The notes: a model not told the origin generated them from the letters alone. Shown: positions 35-62,972, numbered from the stretch's first letter. The stretch is 64,000 nucleotides of DNA from Macrostomum lignano (GCA_002269645.1 NIVC01001242.1:1-64000); one strand, 5' to 3'. A program made the numbers and translations.

Positions 35-3000
35 GCACCCGCTGCGAGAACAACATTGACGACTGCGCCACCAATCCGTGCATAAACGGCCTGTGTAAAG
101 ATTTAATCAATAACTACACCTGCAGTTGCTATCAGGGCTGGCAAGGTCGGCACTGCTCAGCAAACATTAATGACTGCTTTGCTGGCGCCTGTCTGAATGG
201 CGGTCAGTGCATCGATGGCAATTCTAGGTTGGTAGAAAAACAATTTTTACGGACGATTTCACTTTATTGTGTTGCACTCCGTTTATGACTCAGGGGTTGG
301 CGCTCTCTGCAGAAAGATTAGGCGTTTCTGTTTGCACGGGTTCAATTTTTTTATTTATTTCATCTCTGACTTGTGTAACAAAATGTGTACCAGAATGATT
401 AAATTGATTCTTAAAACCAGCGAGTGATTTTAGGCATAAGACGCAGGATTTTTTTATTAGAGGCAGGGGTTGTGTGCACCCTGGCGCACTTTAAGCGACA
501 TAGGCACACAACCGGCGAGAGGCATTACTGCCCATTCCGCCGACTCCCCTGAGCAGGCATACAAGCGCGCGGATACGTACGCAGGCACACGCTCACACAG
601 GAGTGTACAGCGGCCCTAACTTTATATTATCGTTAGACATGTACACTTCACTGCGCCTTGGGGGGGTTGGCTCTCAAAGCCGTTAATTGCACGAGCAGAG
701 CCAAGCCGAGATTCCAATTCAGCCCCAAATTAATGTGACTGCACTTGGAATCGAGCCTGGGTCGCTGGCACACCAGAGCAGCTCCGCTACCGCTGGGCTA
801 CGGCCCCCTATATTTAACATGGAATCCTACGAGTATTTTATAAAGGAAAAGCTTTAAAAAAGGCAAGATATATACTCAGCAACATCGAAAAGTCGCCATC
901 ACAGAATATTCACTATGTAGTCGCCACTTTTGAGATCGCAGGTAAAGTCTCTCGATCTTTGCGAGTGACGCAGCTTAGCTACGCCACGCGGCAGACTTGA
1001 GTTCAGGAATGAAGTGGGGGAAGCGGTGTGCTAGGGTTGGACGGATTAAAGCTACGAATCTATAAAGCTATAAAGCTACAGCTAGAATGGCGAATTTTCA
1101 ATGTTGCTGAGTATATATCACAATATAACCACTGGCTCTCTTTTCTATCAAAAGCAATAACGACTTTTGTGCTGAAAAAAATGAAAACCTTCATTCTTCA
1201 TAATGTATATTTTCGGTTCAATCAATTCTATTATATAGTCAAGTGGGTTAATTTAAACCCATAAAATGCGCCCACACCTTGACAGCTACACCTGCAACTG
1301 CTCCGATACGGGATTTCGCGGTGCCAACTGCAGCGAAAACATTGACGATTGCGCTTCACCATCCAACCCCTGCTCCAACGGTGGCGTCTGCATTGACGGA
1401 GTGAAAAATTACACATGCCAGTGTCTGGCTGGCTACTCCGGCAGGAACTGCACGGTGGATGAGCCGGACTGCAGTCCAAACCCGTGCCACTACAATGGCA
1501 CCTGCTTAGAGAGAAGCAACCAGGCTCTGTATGGCAATGCCAGCCTGCCATATCCATTTGATGGTGTGTTTAACTATTCAGCGGCTGCTGGGTTTGTGTG
1601 CCTCTGTCCGAATGGTAAGTTCTCTTCTGAGTTCAGTTAGCTTCTGCTATTCACTGAGTCCACTCACTGCCATTTGTTCACAATTTAAACAATTTGCGAC
1701 AAAATTTGAAACTAACGCTTTTGAGCCTTACACCATAGGCTTGTGTAAGCGACCCTTAATATCATAGTGTGCTCGCAACCTGAAAAAACCCTTGGACTTA
1801 AAATGTATTTAAAGGCAAGTCATTTTAGAATCCGTCGACATGTGGCATAATGAATTGAGTTTTTTAAAATCGATGAAATGAAGCTACCTTGGCCAAGCGA
1901 ACTCATATCGTAGTGTTATTTGATCGTTGCACTAACATTTAATTAGACCGATAGAAGTCGGTCTAAGTGCTTTAAGGAATACTGACTTCTAACGGTATGA
2001 ATCATATGTTATTTAAACTTACCACTATCACTTATCACTTAGCGTTACAAGAATCGCTAAAGTGTCATTGCAAACAACTCCCTAGTGACTCAAACGACTA
2101 GTGACCTAGTGACCCTAGTGTCGTTTAACAACTCAAACGACTGTAATAAGATAAAGATGCGAGTTTTGAGTCACGAGCACATCGAATGCTTTCAAAAATT
2201 GTTAAAACAGTCGCGAAAAAGTCCTCCAAAAGCCATCGTGTTAGCGCTTAACTTTCTGATAACTTCAGTAGACTAAATAGAGTTGCTATAAGTTATTAGT
2301 GCGAAATGCGATTCTAATTTAAAAAGTAACGCAGCTTACTTACTAGTTGCAGACAATAAAACGCCTCAAATTGACTCTTAAAGGACTTTGACGACTGGTA
2401 CCGTGACATCTCGTCGTTTTGGAGTCGTCTAGAGTCACTTCTTTGCTTTTTTACCTGTGTTCCCTGCAACTTGTCCACCTGCACTCAAATTACTATCCAA
2501 TATAGTTCATTTTCTGCACCAAAGGCTCATCTGGAAATGACTGCTCCATCAACCCGAACGACTGTCTGGACCCGGCCACCAACCGCAGCCTGTGCGCTCA
2601 CGCGTCGAGCTGCACGGACGGCCTGGCCTCATTCACCTGCCACTGCCTGCCCGGCTACGAGGGCCCGACCTGCTCAATCGACATAAACGAGTGCGAACGG
2701 TTCGGACAGCCGTGTCAGAACGGAGCCGTCTGCAAGGATCTGGTAGCGGATTATGCCTGCACCGGCTGCACCGCTGAGTTCGGAGGCAAAAACTGCAGCG
2801 TCAGACTGACTGGCTGCGACTCCAGCCCGTGCGAGAACAATGCTACTTGCGAGCCGCTGCTTCTTCGCGAGCTGCCATCACCTGATCACGGCTACCGCTG
2901 CACCTGCAAGCCTGGCTGGTCTGGACCGCAGTGCAACGAGAACACTCTGGCTTCATTCAACGGGACGTCCAGTTTCAGCGCCAATTTCACCACAACAGCT

Positions 3001-60500: not shown

Positions 60501-62972
60501 CACCCCACCTCCGCTTCTATTGTTCTCGTTTTTTGATTCTTTTGTTCTCTCGACCCCACCAATTATCACATTTTCTCCGATTTTCTCTTTCTTTTGTTCT
60601 CGTTTTCGCACCTAATTATCACCTTTTCTCCAATGTTTACTTTTCCATTGTTCTCAGTTTTCCCCAATTATCCCAGATTTCCAATTCCTTTGTTCTCGAC
60701 CCCAGCCCTATTGTTCTCAATGTTTGCTTGCGCAACACTTTCGCGACCACCCGCTGCGCCAATTATCCCCCACCCCACCTCCGGATTGCGCAATTTCCCT
60801 ATTTCTCATGTTGCTATGCCGGTCTCATGCTTCTCATCATGACTCATTCTGACGTCATTCTGCCGGCAGCCGATCAGAGAGAGGGAACCATGGTAACGAC
60901 CTTGAGGAGGCGGCTGTGAGGTCTATAAAAGGAAGCGATTTCGGCATGAGAATCCTCAACTTTTGCCCACCTTCGGGCTCCTAGTCTTTCTTTAGACTTG
61001 CCGTCAGACTGAGTTCTGACCCATTCGTCTATTAGACGAATCCCTGCCGGTCCGCGGTCTGTTACCGTCAAGTTATCCTTAGCTCCCCAAGCGAGCTCGC
61101 CTATCGGCCAGCGGTCTGATACCGCCCAGCATCATCAGCATCGCCTGATCTACATCAGCGCCTCGCCGCTCCAGCGCATCGCCGCTTCACTGTCTGCCTG
61201 ACTGCAGCCTACAGCCACCCTCGGTCACTCCGCCTCTCTCTCTCTCTCTCTCTCTCTCTCTCTGTGCAGCTGCCGGTAAGTTCCTGTTACTAATTTGTGC
61301 TCCAATTGCCTTTGCTTATCCGGGGTTTGCCTATTTTCCATTGTCTGATTAGAGAGCTGAGCCAATTGTGATACCGCATCTTTTGCTGTATTTTACTCAA
61401 TAGTGAAGCCGCCTAATTGCCTGATTATTCGCCTAAGGGCCTAATTATTAACTATTAACTAACTTCATCATTATTCAATCTTTCACCATCATTTAACTCA
61501 TGGCTTGCTAAGCCTTTCTCCCGGGGTGGCAAAGCATAAGGAGTTTGGGTAAGCTAATGGCCTCTCCCCGTGCAAAGCCCGCCTGTGAGTGCGTGCTGCG
61601 GGGCCGCGTGTGCGTGCAGTAGAGGGATTAGCGAGTCTTGGCACAGAATGGCAGTAGGAAGGTTGCACCCCCATGCTAACGTGTCCCTTCGCCCTGAGCA
61701 ATCTAAACTGGAGACAGTACATGTTCGCCTCATACTACTCTTAGTAATCAAAGTCGCAAGTCAGCCTCGCTCACAGCCACAAAGGATCCCCTGCTGAGAA
61801 ATCCTCCAGGATTGAGCCCAGAGTTCCCGATCATGCCCCAAGCAGAGTCCCTGAACTCGGCTGCATGCGTCTCCCCTGTTAGCCTAAATCCCCTGGTAAC
61901 CAATCCAGGCGGGGCTCTAGCCTCGAGAGGTCTGGTAGAAAGATCCAGGTGCGCCAGGTCACATAGAGTGGTGGCAGCCACTCGGTCATACCATGACCGA
62001 GTGACCAACTATTGCACCTTGGCTACAGGTGGGGTCCATGTGGGTCCTTGGCCCTCTGGTCACGAAGCGCTACCAAAGCTACTAATCATGTGGGCGGGAC
62101 AGTCTGGTGCTGGAGGTCCGTCAGGTCATTGCCCGGTCATAGGCAGCCTACGGTCATTGCCCCTCTAGCCAAGTGTTCGTCTCTCAATAGGAGCGGACAG
62201 GCGACAAGGGCGGTTACATCAAAAGCTATTTTGATATTACTAGGTTTTTTAATTTTTAAAGTTTTTCATTTTGATTTACAGCGGGTCACCCACCTGTGTA
62301 GCCGTAAACGCAGCTGCAGTGATACCAGGGGCTCGCGTCTGTGTTGCTGCAGGTGCCTCCGTTTTGGCAGGGATTGCTTGATGAAGTGCTGCCATCGGAG
62401 GTTGTAGCACAAAAGTTTATTCTAACAGTGCAATATGTACCAGTGTACGCCTCAGTGCACAGACACGGAGGAGTGCTTGACGTCACAGGACCCGGCCAGC
62501 AAGTCCCGCCATTCTTGCAGTCGCCCTCGCTGCAGGCGGCTCGCCTCGTCCGCGCCAATTCGTTGGCGTCCTCGTCAGAACCTTCATATTGAAAATCAGT
62601 GGTGGAAAAATTATATTCATAAAGCTAAAGTTATTAACAGGCATTTAAGCGTGAGAAGAATAATTACTATTGGCAACAGAATTTTCATGAATTCATAACA
62701 CCTAAATATCATAACATCATTCCATAACATTTAAATTTCATAACGTCTAAACTTCAACTGTGTTGGGAATCGTTAATGAAAATCCTAATTTCCTGTAACG
62801 GCAAGTTCATTGGCGGTAAAATGAAAAAAACCTTTTCTTCATGCGAACTTGGCTTACCTGAACCTCCTATCGCTTCATTTACACACAAAATTGACGATAA
62901 ACCGATCATAATTAGCATCCTTATGATTTTTTGCCTCGGATTAACCCGCTGCTGAAGCACTCCAGATGTCAT
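51586..62972 (-). CDS. Crumbs-derived EGF/LamG receptor E with tyrosine-motif cytoplasmic tail (867 aa if the frameshifted cassette exon is skipped)
   Basis: Exons 62858-62972 (signal peptide), 62294-62581, 57643-57835, 57226-57453, [56642-56985, phase 2-2, -1 frameshift at 56869-56871], 56074-56560, 55452-56005, 55130-55347, 54405-54550 ([30 protein letters not shown]), 52061-52150, 51910-51963, 51586-51816. Without the bracketed exon the total is 2604 nt in frame. The tail exons were linked by splice-site and phase logic only. Confidence 0.7.
52342..54311 (+). repeat. 15-bp satellite, array 4, inside an intron of gene E
   Basis: About 2 kb; GGCGCC, then TTGCGCC, then AAAGCC variants. Confidence 0.95.
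58010..58510 (+). mobile_element. Same LINE family fragment in gene E, containing a 38-bp tandem expansion
   Basis: [23 protein letters not shown]; unit TGTCCTACAGGCGGTATGGACTGTCCTGGAATGTCCCA x5.5 at 58179-58386. Confidence 0.65.
58591..58765 (-). pseudogene. Signal-peptide plus single-EGF exon (possible alternative first exon of gene E) with two compensating homopolymer indels
   Basis: Conceptual translation [58 protein letters not shown](G) needs -1 in the A-run 58751-58757 and +1 in the C-run 58653-58656. As written there is a TAA at 58736-58738. Phase-1 GTAAGT donor follows. Confidence 0.55.
59993..62221 (+). mobile_element. Probable solo LTR (2229 bp) in an intron of gene E
   Basis: Termini TGATGTAACC...GGTTACATCA (TG..CA, 10-bp inverted), 4-bp TSD AAAG at 59989-59992 and 62222-62225, TATAAAA at 60924-60930, (CT)n tract near 61233-61262, no long ORF. 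Confidence 0.7.

Follow-up and report, generated by a model that had tools for sequence, protein, structure and literature searches.

The first 64,000 nucleotides of contig NIVC01001242.1 of the flatworm Macrostomum lignano (GCA_002269645.1; this whole stretch is referred to below as the window) hold one end of a tandem array of genes related to crumbs (crb), in which four minus-strand paralogs, here named B, C, D and E, face in convergent orientation a canonical, plus-strand crb that forms the end of the array. Crumbs is the textbook low-copy polarity determinant, and its 37-residue tail is regarded as the invariant business end of the protein. In the reading that we consider probable, the array is old, lineage-specific and shaped by gene conversion, and paralogs B and C are relatives of Crumbs with a diverged tail that would modulate the polarity determinant. 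We see in it a variation on an established family and no new type of system.

The plus-strand gene, whose 3' two-thirds fall within the window (Table 1), is a bona fide crumbs, as the initial annotation had recognised from its tail. For the spliced models, all GT/AG combinations joining adjacent open frames were scored against the family proteins of M. lignano; in crb, B and C the reading frames are uninterrupted, with GTRAGT donors and YAG acceptors. The crb product carries EGF repeats, LamG1, an EGF, LamG2, further EGFs, LamG3, an EGF, a transmembrane (TM) helix and a 41-residue tail with GTYGPS and EERLI, and so combines EGFs interrupted by three LamG domains, a single TM segment, the FERM-binding GTYxPS motif and the ERLI PDZ ligand, all of which are expected of a Crumbs protein. 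In a six-frame scan of the window the GTYGPS...EERLI signature was found once (9296-9460, plus strand), and EGF signatures occurred on the plus strand up to 3.6 kb and on the minus strand from 20 to 62 kb. When the crb tail was aligned with seven other Crumbs tails from vertebrates and arthropods, R, G, Y, P, S, PP and ERLI were invariant; the 5' exons match protein P0110 at 100%. Pfam finds the EGFs and, with Laminin_G_2 (cut-off 22.9 bits), scores LamG2 at 50.2 bits, LamG3 just under the cut-off at 21.7 and LamG1 weakly at 14.6.

On sequence grounds the cluster as a whole is Crumbs-derived, as first proposed. Paralog exons reach 95% DNA identity to crb, and the best full-length matches outside Macrostomum to a rough B protein are CRUM1/CRB2 (28-31% identity, with 75-84% of the query aligned); those to Notch, Jagged and fibropellin are confined to its EGF part. 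BLASTP with the three crb LamG segments finds LamG1 and LamG2 in C and D, LamG2 only in B and E, and LamG3 in no paralog of the window; EGF signatures number about 9 in B, 13 in C, about 9 in D and about 11 in E, and the domain counts of the initial annotation thus hold. The paralogs, then, lack the full set of three LamG domains, the GTY motif and the ERLI end of Crumbs and share its ectodomain by descent; the automatic names Cubilin, Notch and Delta-like given to some of these genes are wrong, and others are called 'hypothetical'. With Pfam, LamG2 of C and E scores 24-25 bits, over the cut-off, and that of B 20.7, just under it; LamG1 and LamG2 retrieved no useful sequence match from the PDB. 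Because the Pfam scores of the LamG domains were weak or borderline, C was folded with AlphaFold2 from a 27-sequence alignment (mean predicted local distance difference test score 61; EGFs 70-88, LamG regions 45-70). Foldseek matched this model to LNS5-EGF3-LNS6 of alpha-neurexin (E 5e-15) and to LG4-5 of laminin alpha2 (E 8e-14, about 440 columns), and the prediction supports the presence in C of two LG folds in an LG-EGF-LG arrangement; the LamG1+LamG2 pair of crb is 93% identical to that of C. Two dibasic motifs of the ectodomain, both of them conserved in crb and all paralogs, resemble furin-type cleavage sites: one, R-x-R-R, immediately precedes the first EGF (N-terminal exons 25497-25460 and 62581-62540), and the other, [RK]S[RK]RS, lies in a LamG2 loop where homogenised and variable sequence meet (crb about 4330-4350; LamG2 exons of B, C, D and E).

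The array is neither an assembly artefact nor a haplotype collapse, an explanation that the initial annotation had left to be checked. The same gene order recurs on two other contigs, with the crb 3' end, a relic, B' and the 3' part of C' at NIVC01000114.1:687-719 kb, and D', C' and the start of B' at NIVC01001300.1:301-328 kb, both 92-97% identical to the window. As the genome of M. lignano consists of three subgenomes (PMC10733133), these are best taken as three diverged copies of one array, whose corresponding genes are called homeologs below. Four related loci (L001-L004) were compared, namely the regions around P0001, P0002, P0005 and P0007. The window covers the crb end of the array only: contig 114 carries, at 855-912 kb and all on the same strand, a member with three LamG domains and a long acidic tail, the gene for P0002, a P0002-like gene, the gene for P0005 and one more, and the chimeric model P0008 contains a three-LamG member with a TGVRVGHLR...PVPQE tail immediately upstream of the homeolog of E. 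Taken together, these additional members imply a family of at least about 10 loci per subgenome, spread over at least 225 kb. In the Mlig_3_7 annotation the suffixes g1 and g2 (BOX15_Mlig031842g2, Mlig025742g2, Mlig014908g1, Mlig015644g1) denote genes in one transcriptional unit, and neighbouring members, e.g. C' and B', may be co-transcribed and then resolved by spliced-leader trans-splicing.

Both B and C have stayed intact, are expressed and evolve under purifying selection. B encodes a signal peptide, its EGFs, LamG2, a half-EGF with the TM segment and a 46-residue tail, and P0003, a model of B itself, matches it at 98-100%. The exon before the tail resembles the EGF half that follows LamG2 in crb, fused to the TM region; a deletion running from one to the other of the EGF halves on either side of LamG3 would account for it. 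C encodes a signal peptide (MNK, then CFATLLL... across the first splice junction), the EGFs, LamG1, LamG2, a TM segment and a tail ending in EVFF. The start of C deserves some comment. Its exon at 39719, which the initial annotation had taken for the upper end of the gene, opens at an acceptor and has no ATG, and the M. lignano spliced leader ends in ATG (PMC8629364); the idea that C has no start codon of its own and receives its ATG from the leader was dropped once a mini-exon had been found. P0007, the transcript-based model of the homeolog, starts with MNK spliced to FFATV..., and its mini-exon, GGACATGAATAAG followed by GTATT, occurs without mismatch in the window at 41000-40983. This exact match places the start of C at 40996 (ATG AAT AAG followed by GT, 40996-40988), 1.3 kb upstream of 39719. 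All other ends first given for the four paralogs agree to the base with those in Table 1, and the relic was likewise found. GenBank BOX15_Mlig proteins derive from genome-guided RNA-seq and transcript assembly (PMC5730564); since P0001 and P0007 belong to this RNA-seq-based annotation, transcripts do join the ectodomain to the TM segment and the EVFF tail in the homeologs, a junction on which the initial annotation depended. The number of EGF exons varies between homeologs (B has 713 residues and P0001 830; C has about 1048 and P0007 977), and the tail protein of C is 100% identical in two of them.

What is the origin of the EVFF tail? The end of the TM helix of crb is interrupted by a phase-1 intron, after which the last exon specifies a tail that ends in PPPEERLI; B, C and D have a phase-1 intron at the corresponding site, followed by the exon of a tail that ends in PxPQEVFF and, in B and C, is 46 residues long. 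The two kinds of end have in common P(-7), P(-5), [EQ](-4), E(-3) and hydrophobic residues at -1 and 0, and global tail alignments beat 5000 shuffles with z of 1.7-3.7 (the P0008 tail was aligned with an assumed VFF end, and its z of 2.1-3.0 is unreliable). A six-frame scan found neither GTY.PS nor ERLI in any paralog of the window, and to this extent the earlier description of the tails stands. To say that the paralogs are devoid of any PDZ-binding motif would be too strong, because the E-V-F-F-COOH end of B, C, D, P0001 and P0007 fits the class II PDZ ligand, X-hydrophobic-X-hydrophobic, as defined with examples such as ENQKEYFF in Caspr4 and NKDKEYYV in neurexin (PMC5623046); what they lack is ERLI. 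The EVFF tail therefore looks like a diverged Crumbs tail from which the FERM-binding motif has gone and in which a PDZ-ligand-like end has been kept, and the original suggestion that the polarity tail was swapped for unrelated ones is hard to reconcile with its place in the same terminal exon. In an exhaustive HMMER search of 1.84 billion representative proteins (among which macrostomid data are sparse), queried with a concatenate of the E tail and the B and C tails, matches to the EVFF tail came from M. lignano only, so that the tail does look lineage-specific, as had been claimed; short tail-only word-index searches were uninformative, as they missed even P0001, whose tail is identical.

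Alternatively, the EVFF tail might be an unrelated exon captured by a crb duplicate, with a function apart from PDZ binding, e.g. as a sorting or endocytic signal. Such a capture would account for the TGVRVGHLR block, which is invariant in EVFF tails and has no counterpart in Crumbs, and for a comparison with the Crumbs tail profile that falls short of significance; moreover, other members of the family clearly bear unrelated tails (P0002, P0004, P0005), those of the transcript-based P0002 and P0005 containing tyrosines. A captured exon, however, would hardly be expected to reproduce the phase and the position within the TM helix of the crb exon, its approximate length and the P-x-P-[EQ]-E-x-hydrophobic-hydrophobic pattern in register, and the tail was found on no protein outside the family among the representatives searched; we therefore regard capture as unlikely and descent from the Crumbs tail as the better account.

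The DNA of the ectodomain is a mosaic. As noticed at the outset, parts of it are nearly identical between crb and the paralogs: over crb 2542-3803 the identity to D 46207-44952 and to C 35631-34369 is 94.8-95.2%, and over crb 4073-4344 each of the four paralogs matches at 88-93%. In codon alignments evaluated by Nei-Gojobori counts, synonymous divergence per site (dS) is low throughout the corresponding coding blocks (Table 1), whereas over the next 105 or so codons of the LamG2 exon it ranges from 1.3 to saturated, with the exception of B-D (0.2); in the second half of this exon it amounts to 1.5-2.3 between crb and C or D and is saturated between C and D. This pattern indicates that gene conversion, in which crb also takes part, keeps ectodomain blocks about 95% alike beside blocks that are saturated. 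The proportion of synonymous differences (pS) between homeologs is only 0.06-0.13, and the saturated dS between paralogs accordingly implies that the duplications are much older than the genome duplication.

How has selection acted on these genes? Between homeologs, the ratio of replacement to synonymous differences (pN/pS), computed per exon in collinear order, is 0.16 for crb, 0.37 for B, 0.52 for C (an approximate total, as the 5' EGF exons of C mapped out of order) and 0.43 for D, and in the variable half of LamG2 it lies between 0.2 and 0.56 among paralogs. No excess of replacement changes is seen, either between homeologs or in that variable half between paralogs, and the diversifying character originally ascribed to the family is thus not borne out. 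The most conserved part of B and C is their TM and tail exons: over about 95-100 codons B has no replacement change and C has one, where some 10-13 would be expected from the rate of each gene; within the tail exons proper all changes are synonymous, and the flanking 800 nt differ by 0.8-7.8%. Because crb contains no similar sequence that could convert these TM and tail exons, their conservation reflects selection on the tail itself.

The initial annotation had counted four near-complete paralogs, which stands for B and C; D and E are frameshifted. D, with a signal peptide, EGFs, LamG1, LamG2, a TM segment and an EVFF tail, has lost 1 nt (T4 to T3 in comparison with B, at about 44400), so that its raw translation stops at residue 829, before the TM segment. 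The deletion was considered as a homopolymer error of the assembly, but the identical change is present in the independently assembled homeolog (L004, contig NIVC01001300.1); being common to both copies, it is real and older than their divergence. Between the two copies of D there is also a 5-nt indel in the TM exon, and the tail differs by 3-4 residues. Most likely, D is a pseudogene; alternatively, it could be rescued, but only through an alternative donor at 44421.

Whether E is a functional gene is doubtful. It encodes a signal peptide, EGFs, LamG2, one long 'CLERS-type' EGF and a different TM segment (54550-54405), followed by a putative tail exon, and it bears a 1-nt frameshift at about 56870 (...GTCAGAAAT-ACACCTGC) in exon 56985-56642, which is of phase 2/2 and hence skippable. 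The TM exon has a good acceptor, but a weak GTTAGC would have to serve as donor for the splice to the tail exon, and the intervening 2.6-kb intron consists mostly of a 131-copy minisatellite. An AATAAA lies 70 nt past the stop of the putative tail, and the read-through alternative has none within 700 nt, this being the sole point in favour of the predicted exon. No homolog of either the TM segment or the tail of E was found in the four related loci, among the 1.84 billion representative proteins, where the tail retrieved low-complexity or retroelement noise only, or among the other tails of the family; there is no similarity to the tyrosine-rich tails of P0002, P0005 and P0004 (z below 0), and the YA[EK]P shared with them is a post-hoc observation only. 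With neither homolog nor transcript support behind its weak donor, the second of the two signalling tails originally proposed, here the tyrosine-motif tail of E, is putative. The relic consists of pieces of two paralog exons, the LamG2 start exon and the next; tblastn gives 84-94% amino acid identity to the LamG2 signature of the family and blastn 80-83% identity to B, C, D and E, and it is also present in the homeologous locus L001.

Could the paralogs, then, be no more than decaying crb duplicates in a repeat-rich neopolyploid genome, conserved through conversion by the functional crb and not through selection? The frameshift of D in two copies with its further indel, the frameshift and unsupported 3' end of E, the relic, the introns filled with minisatellites and inserted elements, and the relaxed pN/pS would all fit such a view. 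It does not explain, however, why the TM and tail exons of B and C, which crb cannot convert, have changed so little, why both genes remain intact over 713 and about 1048 codons despite saturated synonymous sites between paralogs, or why RNA-derived models exist for their homeologs, and we give general decay a low probability.

Nonetheless, the proposal that B and C are Crumbs relatives with a retooled tail has to contend with several observations. The transcript support stems from homeologous copies rather than from B and C of the window themselves, and expression data for Mlig031842, Mlig025742, Mlig015644 and Mlig014908 did not occur in the full texts and supplements of M. lignano papers that were searched. 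Two of the four window paralogs are damaged, and the pN/pS values of the paralogs (0.37-0.52) are relaxed in comparison with crb. As to the tail, hhalign pairs PPCPQE with RPPPEE in register, although without significance (P=0.09, 6 columns), the shuffle p values are only 0.001-0.05, and both PDZ binding by EVFF and an interaction with Crumbs are inferred from sequence.

Least likely of all, in our opinion, is a diversifying cluster of recognition receptors (for allorecognition, gamete or epithelial recognition, or as paired receptors) that joins the Crumbs ectodomain to two new, unrelated signalling tails, since the features that recommend it (the tandem array with variable EGF and LamG numbers, EGF-exon number differing even between homeologs, the hypervariable C-terminal half of LamG2 beside homogenised blocks, the several tail classes of the wider family, some of them tyrosine-rich as in P0002 and P0005, and IVYVDI in the putative tail of E, which fits the consensus [SIVL]xYxx[IVL] of the immunoreceptor tyrosine-based inhibitory motif) are outweighed by pN/pS below 1 wherever measured, tails that are the most conserved part and not paired opposites, TM helices in B, C, D and E without a charged residue for adaptor pairing, an E tail exon that is putative and without homolog, an EVFF tail of apparently Crumbs origin, and the fact that DV1 is an inbred line. 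The paired-receptor or allorecognition organisation originally envisaged is for the same reasons not retained, the only motif of the inhibitory type being that in the putative exon of E, with its weak donor. Clustered immune-type receptor and allorecognition loci do resemble the array in their head-to-tail order, their mosaic of homogenised and divergent stretches, their varying domain numbers and their interspersed pseudogenes, but the array shows no signal of positive selection or of activating/inhibitory pairing, and its ectodomains are built of EGF and LamG and not of Ig or lectin domains.

Table 1. Positions of crb, its paralogs and the homogenised blocks in the window
Feature	Position	Strand	Remarks
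crb, canonical, 3' two-thirds	35-9463	+	spliced model without internal stop
crb exons	35-227, 1286-1614, 2525-3795, 4079-4635, 4774-4898, 5757-6518, 9321-9463	+	
crb exon with EGF, LamG1, EGF, LamG2 start	2525-3795	+	homogenised with C 35654-34381 and D 46224-44960; dS 0.07-0.095
First 79 codons of LamG2 exon	4079-4315	+	homogenised among crb, B, C, D and E; dS 0.07-0.18
LamG2 relic	11201-11522	-	tblastn and blastn against family
Relic pieces	LamG2 start exon 11361-11522; next exon 11201-11275	-	truncated by minisatellite and inserted element
Paralog B, intact, 713 aa	18833-25682	-	junctions match P0001, P0003, P0121
B exons	25682-25586, 25497-25216, 23650-23458, 22848-22621, 20401-19915, 19838-19276, 19194-19061, 18990-18833	-	GTRAGT/YAG
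Paralog C, intact, about 1048 aa	33286-40996	-	junctions; first exon by exact match to P0007 locus
C exons	40996-40988, 39719-39575, 39305-39110, 38453-38226, 36181-35742, 35654-34381, 34297-33750, 33660-33512, 33443-33286	-	
Paralog D, probable pseudogene	43881-49044	-	1-nt deletion at about 44400
D exons	49044-49008, 48927-48688, 47261-46974, 46224-44960, 44878-44317, 44249-44104, 44032-43881	-	
Paralog E	51586-62972	-	predicted model; last two junctions putative
E putative tail exon	51816-51586	-	76 codons; SYAKP and IVYVDI motifs; ends ...SVSRDD

The window is eukaryotic DNA, its exons GC-rich, its introns AT-rich and its minisatellites abundant. A 15-bp minisatellite, TGGCGCCCCTGGTGC, forms four arrays (11549-11761, 27196-27964, 28974-29686 and 52342-54305, one of them inverted) between and inside family genes, the largest, of 131 copies, filling the putative last intron of E; others occupy the last intron of crb (7478-9196), an intron of B (24281-25060) and the first intron of C (40082-40920, with a 20-bp unit). 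Minisatellites may promote ectopic exchange within the family. The segment at 59993-62221, in the 4.4-kb intron of E, is 94-99% identical, in opposite orientation, to L002 22787-25036, which is flanked on contig 114 by tail exons of the P0002 gene, and the two are probably copies of a mobile element common to introns of the family; a repeat in the first crb intron of the window (452-1055) recurs at 50279-51488 with 79-86% identity, just downstream of the putative tail exon of E. Adjoining the relic, 11763-15923 is a 4.16-kb segment flanked by inverted arms of 415 nt with 99% complementarity; on the homeologous contig (L001) the matching flanks lie only some 411 nt apart, so that the segment represents a recent insertion or inverted duplication. 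A full-length 7SL/signal recognition particle RNA gene of metazoan type lies between B and C (30541-30837, plus strand; 249.7 bits, model positions 1-299), and a truncated copy limited to the S-domain, about 84% identical, sits just downstream of the stop codon of B (about 18285-18455). Pfam scans of the open reading frames between the family genes gave no match, and this includes two fragments with ...LLYNAETWT... (16657-17193, minus strand; 17374-17874, plus strand), a motif that we take to resemble the C-terminal region of reverse transcriptases of long interspersed nuclear elements.

How does the array compare with known systems? With the Crumbs family (Drosophila Crb, vertebrate CRB1/CRB2, C. 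elegans CRB-1/EAT-20/CRB-3) it has in common the EGF/LamG order, the single TM segment and a short tail in the terminal exon, and some paralog exons are 95% identical in DNA to those of crb. It departs from it in the LamG number of its paralogs (one or two, not three), in their missing GTY and ERLI motifs, in their conversion with crb, and in forming a tandem array, with at least 10 loci in each subgenome, where other animals have 1-5 dispersed genes. Neurexin (...KEYYV), Caspr4 (...KEYFF) and syndecan (...EFYA) likewise are membrane proteins ending in a class II PDZ ligand, and neurexin and Caspr are, like the paralogs with an EVFF tail, type-I proteins with LamG and EGF domains and a short tail ending in E and three hydrophobic residues; however, there is no homology beyond the generic EGF and LamG folds, and the juxtamembrane 4.1/FERM-binding motif of neurexin and Caspr is absent here.

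As reconstructed from this anatomy, the array would have arisen by tandem duplication of crb, after which internal deletions between EGF halves may have removed LamG3 from all paralogs of the window and LamG1 from B and E, EGF exons would have been gained and lost, and repeated gene conversion would have homogenised blocks of the ectodomain, those of crb itself included. The 46-residue tail would derive from the Crumbs tail exon through loss of GTY, gain of TGVRVGHLR and conversion of ERLI into the class-II-type EVFF. B and C would then be type-I membrane proteins displaying a subset of the Crumbs ectodomain. The cytoplasmic domain of Crumbs acts through its FERM- and PDZ-binding motifs (PMC3564977), and the ectodomain can interact homophilically in Drosophila (PMC3562440). 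On the most parsimonious view, B and C would join or border Crumbs-type membrane complexes, maybe by binding Crumbs through the shared, homogenised ectodomain, and would recruit a different PDZ scaffold instead of FERM partners; they are predicted to be modulators or sub-functionalised relatives of crb rather than a new class of signalling receptor. A bolder idea, which we consider improbable, is that of a combinatorial surface code, made up of an interaction core in the first half of LamG2, which conversion keeps identical in crb and all paralogs, a hypervariable LamG2 edge and the number of EGFs, in which hetero-association would re-route Crumbs from FERM/Pals1 to other PDZ or phosphotyrosine scaffolds; if true, it would represent a flatworm-specific diversification of apical-membrane identity among epithelial, germline and stem-cell-niche cells.

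Lineage-specific expansions of EGF/LamG proteins and duplicate-rich loci in M. lignano are not unusual in themselves, and our full-text literature searches retrieved no account of a Crumbs expansion, be it in Macrostomum or in other flatworms. A specialist in polarity would be surprised by the number of copies, by gene conversion that involves an essential gene and by the retooled tail. A practical consequence is that RNA interference or in situ probes directed at M. lignano crb will cross-react with paralog exons that are 95% identical. If the reading favoured here is right, the array would clearly exemplify the concerted evolution of an essential gene with its paralogs, and would also offer a natural structure-function series of Crumbs modules, long under selection, in a flatworm that is amenable to transgenesis.

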